A stretch of 64,000 nt of DNA from Phaeosaccion multiseriatum. Lineage: Eukaryota; Protista; Ochrophyta, other classes. The notes under the pieces were generated by a model. That model saw nothing but the letters and a program-made list of their open reading frames with translations, was not told the origin of the DNA and ran no database searches. Below, piece after piece: positions 26,306 through 37,721 of the stretch (its first letter is position 1; each line of letters starts with the position of its first letter). Made by a program: the position numbers and the translations under genes. The stretch is taken from assembly GCA_965112735.1 (NCBI GenBank), contig OZ218954.1, positions 1,922,001 to 1,986,000 of the forward strand, read 5' to 3'.

Positions 26306-26991
26306 TTCCTTCGCCAACTGTGAGTATCGCGGGCGGGCGGGGGCTTTTGACTTGAGCGAGTTGGGCCGCCCATACCACCCCCCTCCAGGCTTCGAGCTTT
26401 AAAAGCTTCTGGCCGCAGGCCAGCGGTCTGGGCTTCAGGCTTCTCAGGGGGGCTCAGGGGGGCTCAGGGGGGGGGGGGGGAGAGATTATGCAGGCTTCTG
26501 GCCGCAGGCCAGCCCCGGGCTTCTTGCTTTCGGCCGCAGGCCGCCTCAGCCAGGCTTCTTCTGCTTATCGGGGGGGGGGGGCAGAGAAGCCTCGCGGGGA
26601 GCCGATCCGATCCCTACAGTTTCGCTCAGTTTATAAGGTGATTCCTATTAAGCAATTTTCCCTACAAGAAGCAACAAGTGACCAAGAGCGTGGTACGGGA
26701 GGAGGGAGTGCAGGACCAGCTCCGCGGTTGAGCCGACCCAGGAAGGCGCGCTCTCGCTCCGAGAGCCACATCTGGTGGCTGCAGCTCTGCAGCTGACGAG
26801 ACGGCGAAGTCTGGTCAGGACGTGGCCCTTGGTGGTGGAGGAGCCAGTGCGGCCAGTGCGGGAGACCACGTGCTCGGCGAGTGCGTGTAGGAGCGATGGC
26901 ACGTCCTGACCAGACTTCGCAGTCTCGTCAGCTGCAGAGCTGCAGCCACCAGGAAAGAAAAACGCTGGCAGTTCCTTCGCCAACTGTGAGT
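26306..26991. repeat. Perfect 20-bp direct repeat TTCCTTCGCCAACTGTGAGT at 26306-26325 and 26972-26991, 666 bp apart
   Basis: Exact sequence match seen. It encloses G-runs, three GCA-loop mini-hairpins and the 53-bp inverted repeat. Confidence 0.8.
26772..26952. ncRNA. Long inverted repeat (53-bp arms, 1 mismatch, 75-nt loop); candidate pre-miRNA/hairpin RNA
   Basis: 26772-26824 (ctggtggctgcagctctgcagctgacgagacggcgaagtctggtcaggacgtg) is the reverse complement of 26900-26952 except at one base. The fold is directly visible; an RNA function is inferred. Confidence 0.45.
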
Positions 26992-29216: not shown

Positions 29217-32200
29217 ATGCTTGGCACCAGTGGGAGCCGGAGGCGAAGACGGGCTTCAACGTGCGGCGAGGTAGAGGCTGGCTGGGAGGGCTCGAGGAGC
29301 AGGCCGCCTCTCCCTCCACGGCCGCCGCTGTTCCGACGACCAATAGCTGCTGCTGCCGCTCTGCGATGGAGCCTCGCCGTGTGTTTGAGCCTGGGACACT
29401 TGACCGAGGCATGGGTGCCTGCGGCTCCTTCACTACTCGGCGGGAGGGGTGTTAGATCTTCGCCAGGGGTGAAGCAGCGCTGGATTGGCGGCGGCGGCAG
29501 CAGCCGGTGGTGTTATAGTGGCAGCTCGCGGACTCTTCAAGGCAGCTGCGGAGGCCAGACAAGAGGCGATAGCAGGACTGGCAGGAATGGGTTTGGCGAT
29601 CGCGGCAGTAGGCGGAGAAGCAGTCTCTTCGACAGCTCGAGTCACCGGGAGCCGCGCAACGCGGTGTCGCCTCCTTCGCCCCCAGCAGCTGAGCGAGAAG
29701 TAGGAGCAGCGGCGGGAGGAGGAGGTGGACGGGGGGGCGGGGGAGACGACTCCGATGCCCTGGTGAAAAACGCAGAGAAGATGTTGGAAGGCCTCAAGGT
29801 ACCACAGCTGAAGGAGCTATACCGCAAGGCCGGTGGCAGGCCTGGCTCTCTGCGCAAGTCTGAGTTGGTCGATTCGCTGGCCTCCATCATGGCCGCCAAG
29901 CAGGTCCAGGCGTGGGCAGCGAAGCGCGAAGACACAGCAGCAGACTTACCGCCGCAGCAGGAGAAGAAGACGGAGGAGGAGAGCAAGGACAAGGCACCGC
30001 CAGACCTGTCGCCGCGCCTCCAGCAGCAGCGGTTTCAGAAAGGGGACAGGAGGCACGACACTAGAGGGCATCAGCAGCAGCAGCAGCAGCAGCAGAGACC
30101 AGGACCAGGGATGGGGTATCAGACAGTGGGGCGGCAGCGTCGGCTGCAGCAGCAGCACCACCAGCAGCAGAGGCAGCTGTATCCATCCGGCCCGCACCAA
30201 AGTCAGAACCAGAGGCCACCGCAGAACCAACAACAGCAGCACCGACAGCAGAATCAGAATCAGTATCAGTATCAGTATCAGTATCAGCAGCAGCAGCAGC
30301 AGCAGCAGCATGGAGGCCGACAGCAGCACCAGCGGCGCCCCCCGCGCAGGCTACCTCCGATACCCAACGAGTGGGCCGTGGGCGAGTTTCGAGGCTACCC
30401 CCAATGGCAAGAGGAGAGCTGGGCGTGCCAGGCGTCGGTCAACGCCACCAAATTCCACCTGGAGGGCATGGGTTCCCTCCAGCGCCGCACCAGCAACAAC
30501 TACCGAGACATGCCCGAGAACAATTTGGACGTTGTATTCCTCGGAACGGCCTCCTGTGTGCCCAGCGTGACACGGGGGACGCAGGCCATCTGTCTGCGGA
30601 GGAAGGGCGAGGTGTGGATGTTCGACGCAGGGGAAGGGACACAGATCCAACTGCAGAGATCCTGCATCCGAGCCACGCGCATCAACAAAATCTTCATCAC
30701 CCACGCCCACGGCGACCACTCCTTCGGCCTGCCAGGGCTCATGTGCCTACTGGGGCAGGACCGGGCCCGTATCCGCAAGGAGCCGCTGGAGATTTATGGC
30801 CCCAAGGGGACACGAGACTACCTCCGGGCGGCCCTCCGCTACACCTACGCGCGCATCACTCCGCCCTACGTGGTGCACGAGCTGCACGACATTGCCTTCC
30901 TGCACGGGGATTACTCACGCCCGCCCTTGGACTACAAGATCCATCTCGAGGTCGACGCCATGTATGGGGAGAGGGCCGGCGGAAGGGACATTTACCCGGA
31001 CGAGAGGGGCGTGTATCATGTGTTTGGGGACGAGGAGGTGGACGTGTATGCCGGCCCGATGAAGCATACTGTGCCCTGCGTTGGGTTTGTGGTGCACGAG
31101 AAGCCCAAGCAGGGGACGCTGCGCGCGGAGCTGCTGCAGCCCTTTGTCGATGAGTTCCGAGACGCCATCGTGGTGAGGAGGAGGAGGAGGAGGAGGAGGT
31201 GGAGGAGCGGGGGGGGGCGGGAGGAAGGGGAAGAGTGTGAGAGGGAGGGGTGAAGAACGAACAAGACGAGACGAAGGAATCATCACGCGCTTGTCTGCGG
31301 TGCGGTTCCATACACCCGCTTTTGTCTTTTTCTTGTCCCTTGCGGCGAGCGACCTTCTTTCTCGAGGCTGTGAAGGGACATACATACCACTTCAGGGCGC
31401 CCCCCCCTCTTTGCTGCGCCTGCGATGGCTCAACTCAACTACCCTGCCCCCTTTTCTCTCCCTCTCTCTCTCTTCGCCCCCCCCCCCCCCCCCCTTGCTT
31501 CCTTCGCGCACCACCACAGAAAGAGAAGGGCTACCGCAACCCCAAGATGATCTTTCAGGACATTAAGAGGCTCAAGCCGGGAGAGACGTTCACCTTCCCT
31601 GGCGACGACCGCGTTTGGGAGTATGACGAGGTTGTGAGCCCGAGCGAGGACGGCCGCAAAGTGGTCCTTATGGGTGACACTTGTGACGCCTCGTCGCTGC
31701 TAGAGCTGGCGCAGAATGCGGACATTCTCGTCCACGAGGCCACCAACGCCCTTATACAGCCCTTCGACAACGGAAAGGACTACGGCACCGTCGAGCACGA
31801 AGCGGTCATGCACGGGCACAGTACGGTAAGGAGAAGATGAAAGAAGAAGGATGATGGCAATGTTGATGGTGGTGATGATGATGATAATGTGATGATGATG
31901 ATGATGATGATGATGTTGATGATGACAATGTTGATGATGATGTGATGATAATGATGCAGCCACCGCTTCTTTTGCCAGCTTGGTCGTGCCTGACTCTCCC
32001 CATCGCTCTGCTCGTCGCCCTGCCCCCCCCCCCCCCCCCCTCACTCCTCTGTTCCGCTGGGCTCTGCCTCTGTTTTGTGCTGTGGCGTGTGTGCTTGCGC
32101 CCCCCCTTCCTCCCTTCCCTTCCCTTCCCTTCCCTTCCCTTCCCTTCCCTTCCCTTCCCTTCCCTTCCCTTCCCTTCCCTTCCCTTCCCTTCCCTTCCCT

Positions 32201-32958
32201 TCCCTTCCCTTCCCTCCCCTTCCCTTCCCTTCCCTTCCCTTTCCTTCCCGTCCTCCCTTCCCTTCCCTTCTCTTCCCTTCCCTTTCCTTCCCTTTCCTTC
32301 CCTTCCCTTCCCTTCCCTTCCCTTCCCTTCCCTTCCCTTCCCTTCCCTTCCCTTCCCTTCCCTTCCCTTCCCTCCCCTTCCCTTCCCTCCCCTTCCCTCC
32401 CCTCCCCTTCCCCTCCCTTCCCTTTCCTTCCCTTCCCTTCCCTCCCCTTCCCTTCCCTTCCCTTTCCTTCCCTTCCCTTCCCTCCCCTTCCCTTCCCTTC
32501 CCTTCCCTTCCCTTCCCTTCCCTTCCCTTCCCTTCCCTTCCCTTCCCTTCCCTTCCCTTCTCTTCCCTTCCCTTTCCTTCCCTTCCCTTCCCTTCCCTTC
32601 CCTTCCCTTCCCTTCCCTTTCCTTCCCGTCCTCCCTTCCCTTCCCTTCCCTTCCCTTCCCTTCCCTTCCCTTCCCTTCCTTTCCCTTTCCTTCCTTCCCT
32701 TCCCTCCCCTTCCCTCCCCTCCCCTTCCCCTCCCTTTCCTTCCCTTCCCTTCCCTCCCCTTCCTTTCCCTTCCCTTCCCTCAGCCTCAAATGGCGGGGCG
32801 CTTCGCGAAGAGAATCAACGCCCGCCAGCTTGTACTCTCCCACTTCAGTCCGCGCTACAGAGGAGACGATTCTCCAGAGAGCCGTGAGTGCATGACTGCC
32901 CTTCCTCCTTGTCTTCTCGGCAGGGTGAATACCTGGCTGCCTACCTGCGTATCGGGAC

Positions 32959-33004
<46 letters not shown>

Positions 33005-34184
33005 TGTGTGTGTGTATGTGTGTGTGTGTGCGTGTGTGTGTGTGTGCGTGTGTGCGTGTGTGTGCGTGTGCATGGAAATGCCCGCTTTTGCAGAGTTACG
33101 CCTGGCAGGACTGTGTCGAGGGGAGGGTGATTAGAGAGGAAAGAGAGAAGAGAGAGGAGAGAGGAGAGGAGGGGAGGGGAGGGGAAAGAAGAGAGAGAAG
33201 AGAATGAGGGGAGGGAAGAGAAGGGAGAGGAGGAGAAGGGATAGAAAACAAAGGAGAGGAGAGGCGAGGCGAAGGAGAAGTCCGGCTATATTGGTGCAGA
33301 GCCTTGTGTACTTCCCACAGTACTAACCCTCCCTCTGTCCCTCCCTCCCTCCCTCCCTCCCTCCCTGTCCCTCCCTCCCTTCCTCCTTCCCTCCCTCCCT
33401 CTCTCCCTCCCTTCCTCCCTCTGTCCCTCCCTCCCTGTCCCTCCCTCCCTCCCTCCCTCCCGCCCTCCCTTCCTCCCTCTGTCCCTCCCTCCCTTCCTCC
33501 CTCCCTTTCTTTCTCCCTCCCTCCCTCCCTCCCATCCTTCCTCCCTCTGTCCTCCCTCCCTTCCTCCGTCCCTTTCTTCCTCCCTCCCTCCCTCCCTCCC
33601 TCCCTCCCTCCCTCCCTCCCCTCCCCCTTGTTATGTCTCGGTGCTTGCAGTTGCCGTCATGCGACGGATCGAGGAACAGGCCAGGGCTGTAGGTGTGTGC
33701 CCGTTCGAAATCCTTGTGTCGGGTGGGGAGGCTTGTTTTTTTTTGTCACACCCCTTCATGCACTGGCTGCTTCGTGGTGGCCTGTCTCCTCTGACAAGCA
33801 TTGCCCTCTTGGCGTCGCCCCCCTCTCTTGGGTCTTTTCCCTTCCCTCACACAACCAACTGCGTCCGCTTCCTTGACCACCACAGCCGGCCTCCAACCCT
33901 ACGAGGTCATTGCTGCTTGGGATATGATGAAACTGTCCGTGCTGCCCAAAGAAGCCTACGAGGAGTGGTCGGTGGAGGCACAGCGGGCCATCGAGCAGGA
34001 GGACAAAGACACCGCAGAGGTTGTGGCTGCCTCCAGAACGCAGTTCGAAGAGTGGTTAAGCGCACGGGATGGGGGGCACGCGCTGAGTCAAGAGGAAGCG
34101 CTCGAGGAGGAGCTCGCCAAGACACGGGGGGAGGGGGGAGGGGAGGAGGGCAAGGAGGAGGACGACTTTACCTACGAGTTTTGA
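29217..34184 (+). CDS. tRNase Z (RNase Z, metallo-beta-lactamase), probably plastid-targeted, with N-terminal SAP-like domain and Gln-rich linker
   Basis: VVFLGTASCVPSVTRG, WMFDAGEGTQ, IFITHAHGDHSFGLPG (His motif), KHTVPCVGF, GRKVVLMGDT, DILVHEAT, HGHST|PQMAGRFA, LVLSHFSPRY and AWDMM. Exons approx. 29217-31171, 31520-31825, 32784-32883, 33651-~33690, ~33883-34184. Leader ...WSLAVCLSLGHLTEA|WVP. Confidence 0.92.
32113..32780. repeat. (CCCTT)n tract of ~670 bp running into a 3' splice site
   Basis: Direct inspection. Confidence 0.95.
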
Positions 34185-35053
34185 GCTTTTGGAGCAGCAG
34201 CATTTGCTTTGTTGCCCAAAGGCTTGGGGGATTCTGTGATTTTCAAGATAAATTCCTTTCCAAAAACTCCTCCTCGACGATTCGACTTCTACTTTTGAAG
34301 AAGGAAGTGCAATTGTCGTTCGTTCGTTCGTTCCAGAGGGCGTCATCCTCGTCACCCACACACCTGGGGCAAGCCGTCCGTGTTACATTTTTTTTGTTTT
34401 TTATTTTTTTGAAGTAGAACAATAAGTATAGCTGATTCAGCCGCTTCTCGTTACTGTAGTGCTCCATCCTCCATCCATCTGTGAATGATGGAGGACCACA
34501 CAGTGAGATTCGCTTCACACTGACTGACTGATGCGTCCTGCGCTGGCCTGGCCTTGGCCTTGGCCCAAGCAGTCTATCCCCCTCCTTGGACCCCTCCTTG
34601 GACCCCTTCCCCTTGCAGCCACCACTCCCATCTCCACAGCGTCGACGTGGTAAACAGGCGGGCGGGCGGCACTCAGAGGTAGAGAGTCCTCGGAGGCTTC
34701 GCTACTGCCCGTATGATGCCTGTATGGTATCACGCTTGTCGCATGCGGCGCTATAAGACCTCCTCTTTAACAATCCTCACAGCCAGCCCCACCTTCTGGA
34801 CGGTTTCGTGCTTACCTCGCCTCAGTACACGCCCACAATAGCGAGCAAGTACCGTGGAGAGACTGGGTGTACTGTTCTTCCCATGTGCCTCCACATGCTC
34901 ATCGGCGCTTGCTCCGGAGGTAACAAGAGCTCAAACCCCGCAAGCGCCGAGGCCAGGCAACCCCAAGAGAAGAGGCTTTGGGATTGTTGCGGGAGATGGA
35001 ATGAATGGAGAAAGGGCCCGCTGAGGAGGGAGTAAGGAGCCCACACCACCGCC

Positions 35054-35217
35054 ATTGATGTGTGCGTCAAGACCAGTCAACACTTGGAGGCATTGGGCTT
35101 ATTGAGGGAGATGAAGGAAGACGTGCTGCGGTCTTCCTACCTTCAACGGTCTTGCTTCATCTCCTTCAATAAACCCAATGCCTCCAAGTGATGACCGGTC
35201 TTGACGCACACACCAAT
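35054..35217 (-). ncRNA. Long foldback (69-bp arms, 26-nt loop); strong pre-miRNA-like candidate
   Basis: 35054-35122 pairs with 35149-35217 with no bulges and 6 non-Watson-Crick positions. Three of these become G-U on the minus strand versus one on the plus strand. It lies 155 nt downstream of the glyoxalase II stop codon, on the same strand. Confidence 0.55.
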
Positions 35218-35371
35218 AAAGTGATGGTATTGTGGTTGTAACTGTAAGACCCTCCTTGTTCATACGGTCTAGCGGGTCCAGGGACTTGGATCGAGTCAGT
35301 CAGTCGTTCGTCGCGTCTCACTGCCCCATGCTACGCATGAGGAGCTTGACGAGAGGAGCGACTGCGCGCCA

Positions 35372-36747
35372 TCAGAGGCCATCCTTCATGTCTCTGAGCC
35401 GCTGAGGGAGGAGAGGAAAGGGGGCAGGGGGAGGAGGAGGAGGAGGAGGAGGAGAGAGGGGAGGAGGGGGAGAGGGAAGCGGCAGGGGTAAACGCAATGA
35501 GAGAGGGGGGCAAACGGGAAAACTCAATGAGAGAGGGAGACAGGACACAATTGGGGGAGGGTAAGAGGGCGGGCGGGAGGACAGGGGGAGGGGGAGGGGG
35601 AGGGAGGGGAAGGGCCAGCCACGTCCGGCACAAAAGTATTGTAAGACCAGACTTTAGCGACGCAGTTAGTCAGTTCCTCCCCCCCCCCCCCCTTCCCTGC
35701 TTCCCTGCTTCCTTGCCCTGCCTATCCTCGTAATAGCACCACCACGACACCTCACCTGTAGGGTCTGCGCCGGGGTGGCGTCGTCGCCAAGCCCAGTCTT
35801 GGCTCGGATGGCGGCATTGTTGACACGCAAAAAAGGGTTGGTGACCAGCTCCTTGGCGATCCTGGCAAGGCATCGGCACGCGCATCGAGGTCAGGCATGG
35901 ATCGAGGTCAGGCATGCACGATGGCAATTTTCAATGGGGACGAATCACCGAGCCAATTCATTTCCCGTTTACCCCCCCCTGTGCCGTAACAAGGCGTAAG
36001 TAAGCGTAAGTAAGCGGGCATGTACAGACCAAAAACTCAAGGCCTCGAGGCAAATGTCCCACTCCATGTCCTCCTCTCCCCCCCCACCGCTGCCGCTGCT
36101 GCTGCTGTATTACCAACTGCTGTACCACCAACTGCCGCTGCTGCTGCTGCTGCTGCTTCTTCTCCTCCTTGACTCACGTGCTGGGGATGGTGAAGTGACC
36201 GTTTATTCTTTGCCTTTCGGCCCATGCCACTGCAGCCTTCAGCTCCTCGTTATCTGTCGAGAGCGAGCGGATTGCCACAAGCAGTAGAAGCAGAGTGCAT
36301 CTGTCAGCGTTTTGGTGGCTGCAACAAACGCTAAGAGGTAGGCAGTCCCACACGCGGGGCAATATCACGAGAGATGACATTCACTGGTGACCCTGAGGCT
36401 GGAGGGAGCCCTGTCTGTCTGTGCCTGCCTGTGCACACACCAGGGTCGATCTTGGAGGCGAATTTGTAGTTACTCAGTGTGTATTCGTGGCCGCAGTACA
36501 CCTTCGTGTCCGGAGGTAACTATGGTGGAATTTGAATTGAAGATGGGAGATCAGAGGCGGTGGGAGGGAGGGAGACATGAGAGAAGCGAGGGCGGGTCAG
36601 GCGGGTTTCCGTGTTGGTGTGCTAATGCCTTTGGCACATGCCGACGCAGAGACAGCACCCACCTCGGAGAGCTTGGTAAGCGATGGATACACGACGTCTC
36701 CAGTACCTTCAAAGAACTTGCCAACCCTGAGTGCGAGGTAGAGAAAT

Positions 36748-36778
<31 letters not shown>

Positions 36779-37721
36779 AGGAGGAGGAGGCGAGGTAGAG
36801 GAGTGAGGAAGAGAGAGGAGGAGGAGGCGGAGGAGGCGGCGGAGGAGGAGGAGGAGGAGGCGAGGGTCTCTGCGTCTACTAACCCGCCGACGAAGAGGGT
36901 ATCCCCCGTAAACACGGCGTTTTGGTCTCCCTCCACAGCGTAGTAGCAAATATGGCCCATTGTGTGGCTGTGAGCATGCGCATAGAGGCAGACAAGGACA
37001 GAGAAAGAGGAGAGAGAGAGAAGAGAAGTCCAGAATGGGGAGATCGTGAGGGAGGCGAACTTACTACTGGCACCACAGACCCCACACTCAAGCACACACG
37101 CCTTCACTGCCCATGCTGGGCGCTGCAAGAGTGGCGAATGCAGGAGCAGAGAGGGTCCAGGATCAAGACAGCCCCCTGTCATGCGGTGCTTTCGTGCCGT
37201 CCACTGCTCTGCACTCACCCAGGCGTATGGAGGCACTTGACCTGGATGCCCCCCTCCTCTCCCGCAATGGTGAGCACATCCCCGTCCTCCACCAGCCTCG
37301 TGCAGGCCTCCACGTGCTCTGTCTTGCCGCCAAGCACGCTCACCCCCGGGACCAGCTTCGCGAGCTTGGAGTTTCCGCCGGAGTGGTCCTGATGTGGAGC
37401 GCATTAGAATAGAGACACATTCCCCTCCTTCCCTCTCTTCCACTTACCCAGTGCTTGTGTGTGGCCAACAGCGTTGTGATGGTAACGCCTTCCTCCTCTG
37501 CCGCTTTGAGGATCTGCGGATCCAAATAGAGAGTAGACGATGAGGATGTGTGCAAAGAGGAGGAGGAGGAGGAGGAGAGGAGGAGGAGGAAACCCTTTTC
37601 TTTCTTTTTGCCTTACCTTCTCTGGTTCGGCTGGATCGATCACCGCCGCTAGCCTTGAAGGCTCATGGATAAGAAGGTACCCATAGTTGTCTTCGAGCAA
37701 TGGGACGGAAACGACTTTCAT
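35372..37721 (-). CDS. Hydroxyacylglutathione hydrolase (glyoxalase II); ~9 exons
   Basis: Spliced product: [33 protein letters not shown]|DHSGGN, LHTPG|[20 protein letters not shown]|[29 protein letters not shown]|[12 protein letters not shown], and final exon RLRDMKDGL* (35401-35372). Confidence 0.93.

Follow-up and report, generated by a model that had tools for sequence, protein, structure and literature searches.

The foldback examined here lies in a window of 64,000 nt (the whole stretch of DNA that was analysed), between the ends of two convergent genes: an open reading frame on the plus strand, which ends at 34184, and a glyoxalase II gene on the minus strand, to which the foldback is much nearer. 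Read down the minus strand from 35235 to 35041, the hairpin starts 137 nt past the inferred glyoxalase II stop codon and on the same strand as that gene, in agreement with an earlier sequence-only reading which had placed it just 3′ of glyoxalase II and on the glyoxalase II strand. The coordinates of the individual features are collected in Table 1. The exons of glyoxalase II were searched singly against the Pfam HAGH_C profile and the spliced model is a putative one. The matches are colinear on the minus strand, with profile positions 1–16 in 36331–36501, positions 11–41 in 36177–36299 and positions 42–73 in 35756–35860. Splice-like motifs are also present around the hairpin, namely GTGAGA at 35321 and ctccctcctcag at 35021, and a 3′-UTR intron running from 35321 to 35021 and enclosing the hairpin is possible; the acceptor-like motif may be a chance product of GA-rich sequence, and the hairpin itself may lie beyond the end of the glyoxalase II mRNA.

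Table 1. Features of the foldback and of the adjoining 3′ part of the glyoxalase II gene (positions in the window)
Feature	Position	Strand	Basis
Degenerate PPR relic: most of one unit and a unit junction	34939–35053	+	tblastn with PPR-SMR protein, blastn with unit consensus, gapped alignment
Acceptor-like motif ctccctcctcag|CGG, just past the hairpin	35018–35032	−	87% identical to the last-exon acceptor at 35399–35413
Whole foldback with weak basal extension	35041–35235	−	RNAfold, base composition
Left arm, PPR sense on + (AIDVCVKTSQHLEALGLLREMKED), unit positions 28–96	35054–35122	+	Repeat search, translation, unit alignment
26-nt loop, in which GGAAGAC and GTCTTCC could form a small pairing	35123–35148	.	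Sequence, repeat search, fold
Right arm, inverted copy of the left arm, PPR sense on − (IGVCVKTGHHLEALGLLKEMKQD), clear arm-specific changes	35149–35217	−	Repeat search, alignment
Last glyoxalase II coding exon (RLRDMKDGL), stop TGA at 35372–35374, acceptor ctcctccctcag	35372–35401	−	Inferred from frame, splice motifs and colinear HAGH_C exons
Glyoxalase II exon (...AQTLQ), HAGH_C positions 42–73, donor CAG|GTGAGG at 35756	35756–35851	−	HAGH_C, E = 2.2e-5
Glyoxalase II exon, HAGH_C positions 11–41	36177–36251	−	Pfam HAGH_C

Low-complexity sequence is found on both sides of the foldback. The last glyoxalase II intron carries a purine-rich (GGA/GGG)n tract at 35406–35480, which pairs imperfectly with a pyrimidine tract at 35675–35704. 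On the other side, at 31806–33140, lies a very strand-biased low-complexity repeat of about 1.1 kb. Its two strands translate as (GKGRE)n and (PFPSL)n, a (GT)n tract comes next, and the repeat has no evident function; the segment 32001–34000 has a GC skew of −0.42 and an AT skew of −0.53.

The repeat search returned the foldback with exactly the coordinates and geometry that had been described for it, with two bulge-free arms of 69 nt each, 91% complementary to one another across a 26-nt gap, in which six of the 69 positions are non-Watson–Crick. When 35041–35235 was folded with RNAfold, a free energy of −126.3 kcal/mol (z −17.2) was obtained for the plus strand and one of −137.9 kcal/mol (z −18.2) for the minus strand, the glyoxalase II strand, which is the more stable of the two, and none of 200 dinucleotide shuffles folded as well. 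The weak basal extension that had been proposed (ccaca/tgtgg) is paired in both folds. The suggested preference for the minus strand likewise holds, as the six mismatches include three G·U pairs on this strand versus one on the plus strand, and the hairpin is indeed richer in AT than its surroundings (GC 0.50 versus about 0.60 in both flanks). Folding of the 522 nt that follow the glyoxalase II stop codon also retains the hairpin. A stable hairpin precursor without large bulges is a structural criterion for miRNAs (PMC4513859), and the stem has a structure of this kind.

The sequence of the foldback had also been taken to be unique and non-repetitive, and here the genome-wide copy-number search gave a different picture, in which nothing but the inverted arrangement of the arms is unique. 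Across the 67.1 Mb and 22 contigs of the genome there are 602 matches to the query 35041–35235, and nearly all of the 150 matches listed, the locus itself aside, fall on the left-arm part of the query, with identities of 81–89%. The matches listed form tandem arrays with a period of 105 bp on contigs C1, C3, C4, C7, C10, C12 and C15, and this period corresponds to 35 codons, that is, to one pentatricopeptide repeat (PPR) unit of 35 aa. The left arm translates to TAIDVCVKTSQHLEALGLLREMKED and the reverse complement of the right arm to IGVCVKTGHHLEALGLLKEMKQD, both with PPR helix motifs. One of the arrays (L003:905–3004, minus strand) holds an ORF of 699 aa consisting of near-identical 35-aa repeats (SYNATIDACAKASQHVEALGLLREMKAEGIKPD) and a C-terminal Smr domain, and the array protein matches the Pfam profiles PPR_2 (E = 2e-209) and Smr (E = 8e-6). 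Compared with the PPR unit consensus, the left arm is 86.7% identical over 35043–35117 (75 nt) and the right arm is 81% identical over 63 nt. The arms are thus fragments of PPR units of the PPR-SMR family.

Searches with tblastn and blastn and a gapped alignment place the left arm at the 3′ end of a dead PPR relic of about 1.7 units, which occupies 34939–35122 on the plus strand. The part of the relic that adjoins the arm contains frame-breaking insertions and an in-frame stop (LLREME*), and its gapped alignment with a 49-unit family consensus shows identity at 78 of 99 aligned columns, with four insertions. With its 1.7 or so units, its in-frame stop and its four insertions, the relic offers no ORF with tandem 35-aa motifs such as a functional PPR gene would have. 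Only the last 70–80 bp of the relic are repeated, in inverted form, as the right arm, and there is no symmetry past the arms, the alignment score of the outer flanks being 15 versus a shuffle mean of 16. The 69 arm columns comprise 53 that are identical in both arms and in the PPR consensus, ten differences shared by the two arms and six positions at which the arms differ from each other. These column counts, together with the lack of outer symmetry, point to a local event in which the end of a PPR fragment that had already diverged was duplicated in inverted orientation, and we consider it very probable that the foldback arose by inverted duplication of a PPR pseudogene fragment. An assembly artefact or palindrome was judged improbable and rejected, since the arms differ at six of 69 positions.

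A miniature foldback transposon (MITE) would have the same shape, and the window does contain a genuine MITE-like foldback family, at 26772–26952. However, the arms are homologous to PPR coding units, and the left arm is continuous with further PPR relic sequence, the PPR homology running on through the left boundary of the foldback. On reading the sequence, no flanking direct repeat (target-site duplication) is visible at 35041/35235 or at 35054/35217. When the 67 Mb were searched for two conserved cores, each as an inverted pair, this locus was the only one to have them (controls, 0–1); the census used exact cores of 10–11 nt, misses diverged hairpins and thus gives a lower bound. With a single locus and coding-derived arms, in place of the many copies and the target-site duplications by which MITEs are recognized, this reading was rejected, and its probability is close to nil. 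A role in cis is also conceivable, in which the structure would serve as an RNase III site that destabilizes the glyoxalase II mRNA or would aid the termination of convergent transcription. Its location between convergent gene ends (the plus-strand ORF end at 34184 and the minus-strand stop at 35372), near the glyoxalase II stop, would suit such a role, but the PPR origin of the arms would be incidental to it, and we regard this explanation as highly improbable.

A second PPR-derived hairpin locus is found 73 kb upstream on the same contig (C5:1883653–1884031; L009:4654–5032). It is an array with 52-nt inverted repeats and 23-nt loops, in which at least two tandem hairpins lie 252 bp apart. 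The arms encode a PPR unit junction (GTKAEGLNPDVCSFNAT), a tblastn search with the PPR-SMR protein matches both strands, and the inverted cores of the array are unique in the genome; no intact PPR gene was found near it within the sampled flanks. Both loci, which share a contig, are hairpins of inverted PPR fragments away from intact PPR genes, whereas the arms of the array represent the junction MKAEGLNPDVCSFNAT and are tandemly repeated, and those of the studied hairpin represent the helix part AIDVCVKT...LLREMK and form a single hairpin. No DNA similarity was found between the array and the hairpin at 35041–35235, so the two appear to be independent events, and a common origin is not supported. 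In a non-redundant sample of 264 kb, PPR homology was found at these two loci only, in both cases as an isolated fragment in hairpin form; the sample is a small one, composed of the window, L009 and twenty 10-kb pieces, and it contains the second locus by prior choice and not by chance. That both of the isolated PPR fragments sampled are hairpins is suggestive.

As to the capacity of this genome for small-RNA pathways, profile matches gave an Argonaute candidate with a PAZ match at C13:416749–416892 and Piwi matches at C13:419594–420865, which lie 2.8 kb apart on the same strand and look like one Argonaute gene (C13:416749–420865). An RdRP is found on C1 (C1:3767137–3770084), and RNase III domains are found on C1, C2 and C4 (C1:4947333, C2:3563452 and C4:3820038). 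At the C2 locus a full RNase III domain comes after a second, weak match to RNase III (E = 0.008). None of the three loci with RNase III domains showed a clear, full Dicer architecture, and none has a PAZ domain beside the RNase III domain. About 6 kb from the C2 RNase III gene, at C2:3569791–3570483, are PPR units that do not keep a steady period of 105 bp but are spaced irregularly (81, 105 and 107 bp, for example), a closeness that is probably a coincidence. With Argonaute, RNase III and RdRP genes in the genome, a small-RNA precursor is still a tenable hypothesis for the foldback.

The explanation that we favour begins with the dead PPR fragment of about 1.7 units on the plus strand between the two convergent genes, the last 70–80 bp of which were very probably duplicated in inverted orientation 26 nt away, giving the 69-bp foldback. 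If the glyoxalase II transcript or read-through from it covers the foldback, the stem would be a substrate for the RNase III/Argonaute machinery, and its processing would be expected to yield a mixture of siRNAs of about 21 nt, corresponding to a hairpin-RNA or 'proto-miRNA' stage and not to a mature, precise miRNA. Of the two arms of a minus-strand transcript, the 3′ one is antisense to PPR mRNAs and could guide silencing of the expanded PPR-SMR family. The best reading of the locus, which we hold with about even confidence, is that of a candidate hairpin-RNA (proto-miRNA) locus born by inverted duplication of a fragment of its target family. That small RNAs are produced from the foldback seems a little short of an even chance, and a selected regulatory role for it is unlikely.

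The potential targets were followed with two 21-mers of the left arm, which have 88 and 204 sites in the genome at up to two mismatches, versus none for reversed-pattern controls; the sites listed, apart from the hairpin's own two arms, are all in PPR arrays. This complementarity to PPR genes is due to homology and is hence not independent evidence for targeting. A scan of 33500–37000 against Rfam with permissive thresholds returned only sub-threshold generic miRNA-hairpin matches. Those on the hairpin score 24.6–28.2 bits versus gathering scores of 69–90, and no known miRNA family lies above threshold. The strongest hits of the scan, at 35557–35735 (MIR2118, 42.6 bits versus 85), fall on a low-complexity purine/pyrimidine inverted repeat and are almost certainly spurious. 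A 20-nt piece of the loop had no exact match in metagenome contigs, and two small ORFs, one spanning the hairpin and the other from a glyoxalase exon, had no exact protein match in public, possibly transcript-derived contigs, the records of this genome itself being excluded.

The sequence-only reading had proposed a pre-miRNA or hairpin RNA hosted in the 3′ UTR. The proposal is partly supported: the structure, the strand preference and the position in the probable 3′ region of glyoxalase II hold. The derivation of the arms from PPR-coding fragments had escaped that reading and alters it, and no Rfam family scores above threshold. Since the arms are PPR-coding fragments, heterogeneous siRNAs (of a hairpin RNA or proto-miRNA) directed against PPR genes are predicted, and not a canonical precise miRNA. 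A canonical microRNA gene, releasing one precise miRNA/miRNA* duplex with 2-nt 3′ overhangs from an intronic or 3′-UTR hairpin as in brown algae, would be compatible with the size of the foldback (about 165–195 nt, within the range for Ectocarpus, where the average is 170 nt), with its location on the strand of the host gene, as for most Ectocarpus loci (PMC4513859), and with the flanking splice-like motifs. However, a near-perfect stem of 69 bp typically gives rise to heterogeneous siRNAs and not to one duplex (PMC1790633), the best Rfam score on the hairpin is 28 bits versus a cut-off of 90, and the arms are coding-derived, whereas no resemblance to coding genes is seen in the miRNAs of brown algae (PMC4513859, PMC5381526). 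We therefore consider a canonical microRNA gene very improbable.

A more serious alternative is that the foldback is an inert by-product, namely template-switch debris of repair or replication in a decaying PPR pseudogene fragment, which is untranscribed or has products without effect and which will decay. The adjoining relic is clearly dead, with its stop and indels, and the divergence between the arms has already reached 9%. Selection was tested in two ways, neither with a significant result. Compared with the consensus of one gene, the six differences between the arms are all changes in the right arm (6:0), which would be the non-guide arm on a minus-strand transcript; compared with 43 distinct units from three arrays, four differences are clear in this direction, none is opposite and two are ambiguous, which is not significant, and the asymmetry was dropped as a sign of selection on the target-complementary arm. 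The arm is identical to the family consensus at 60 of 68 columns versus 78 of 99 for the adjoining relic (p = 0.15, not significant), and this pattern of preservation mirrors the position-wise variability of the family itself (0.90 versus 0.82), so that better preservation of the arm was also dropped, the family variability accounting for the difference. The sole hint of preservation that is left comes from indels, of which there are none in the arms versus four insertions in the adjoining relic. This hint counts against an inert by-product, as do the position of the foldback only 137 nt past the stop of a housekeeping gene and on its strand, the hairpin form of both isolated PPR fragments in the 264-kb sample, and the Argonaute, RNase III and RdRP genes, with which a transcribed stem of 69 bp would likely be diced. 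We judge an inert origin to be a substantial possibility, though one to which we would not give an even chance.

Among known systems, the candidate hairpin-RNA locus comes closest to the young MIRNA or hairpin-RNA loci of plants that arise by inverted duplication of a fragment of a target gene. In Arabidopsis, 16 loci are reported to have been born in this manner (Fahlgren et al., 2007; PMC1790633), MIR161 and MIR163 being the examples of the 2004 model of such births (PMC1790633), and large near-perfect foldbacks first give heterogeneous siRNAs and need a nearby promoter (PMC1790633). The criteria of this model (Allen, 2004) include arms that resemble the coding family beyond a single small-RNA site, a local inverted layout that can be transcribed as one self-complementary RNA, and complementarity to members of the donor family. 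At the present locus both arms resemble the coding family over their whole length and not just over a 21-nt site, they are inverted around a short loop of 26 nt in a long near-perfect stem that could be transcribed as one RNA, and the complementarity to the donor family is present as a potential. The model also asks for transcription near a working promoter and for processing by a Dicer-type enzyme, to which the location 137 nt past the glyoxalase II stop on the same strand and the Argonaute, RNase III and RdRP genes relate only indirectly. The donor family is, moreover, the PPR family, which is targeted by miR161, miR158 and miR400 in Arabidopsis (PMC1790633). The studied hairpin differs from the plant loci in that it is found in a stramenopile alga, in another eukaryotic supergroup, and is known from sequence alone, in that it has no evident promoter except for possible co-transcription with glyoxalase II, and in that the donor here is a PPR-SMR family with near-uniform repeats.

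The miRNA loci of the brown algae Ectocarpus and Saccharina offer a second comparison, possibly within the same broad lineage as the host of the studied hairpin. Convincing miRNAs among stramenopiles are those of brown algae only, diatoms being without canonical ones (PMC5381526). The brown-algal foldbacks are long (mean of 170 nt in Ectocarpus) and lie mostly inside host genes and on the host strand (PMC4513859), and the studied hairpin is likewise a long foldback next to or in a host gene and on its strand. The pre-miRNAs of Ectocarpus and Saccharina, however, show no resemblance to protein-coding genes (PMC4513859, PMC5381526), whereas the studied hairpin is coding-derived, which makes the analogy imperfect; they are also mostly intronic and supported by sequencing, whereas the studied hairpin is located in a 3′ region and has been read from genomic DNA.

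A wider proposal would be that hairpin genes made of PPR fragments, the present locus and the array on C5 among them, dampen a fast-expanding PPR-SMR family through small RNAs, and that an arrangement like that of plants has evolved independently in a stramenopile microalga. We hold this to be improbable; if it were true, target-derived silencing-RNA genes would exist in a group whose known miRNAs are so far confined to brown algae, where none derives from coding genes. Plants police their PPR family with miRNAs and secondary siRNAs. Births by inverted duplication have been documented for land plants; for brown algae it is stated explicitly that none were found. Should small RNAs arise from the foldback, it would be a snapshot of the earliest stage in the birth of a silencing-RNA gene from its target gene; should none arise, it would simply be a scar, now decaying, of a rearrangement in a very dynamic gene family.

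The second long foldback of the window, at 26772–26952, has 53-nt arms that are 98% complementary and a 75-nt spacer. It has 79 matches in the genome, with about 40 copies of a unit of about 133 bp at 88–92% identity on at least 14 contigs, and many copies of the family have an internal inverted match of their own. As judged from these copies, this foldback is a MITE-like element and not a unique miRNA candidate. It resembles the PPR hairpin in being a foldback of similar size in intergenic DNA, but differs from it in having at least 40 dispersed copies, the PPR hairpin being single-copy and coding-derived. Apparently 'unique' foldbacks of this genome should hence be compared first with its PPR repeat and MITE families.
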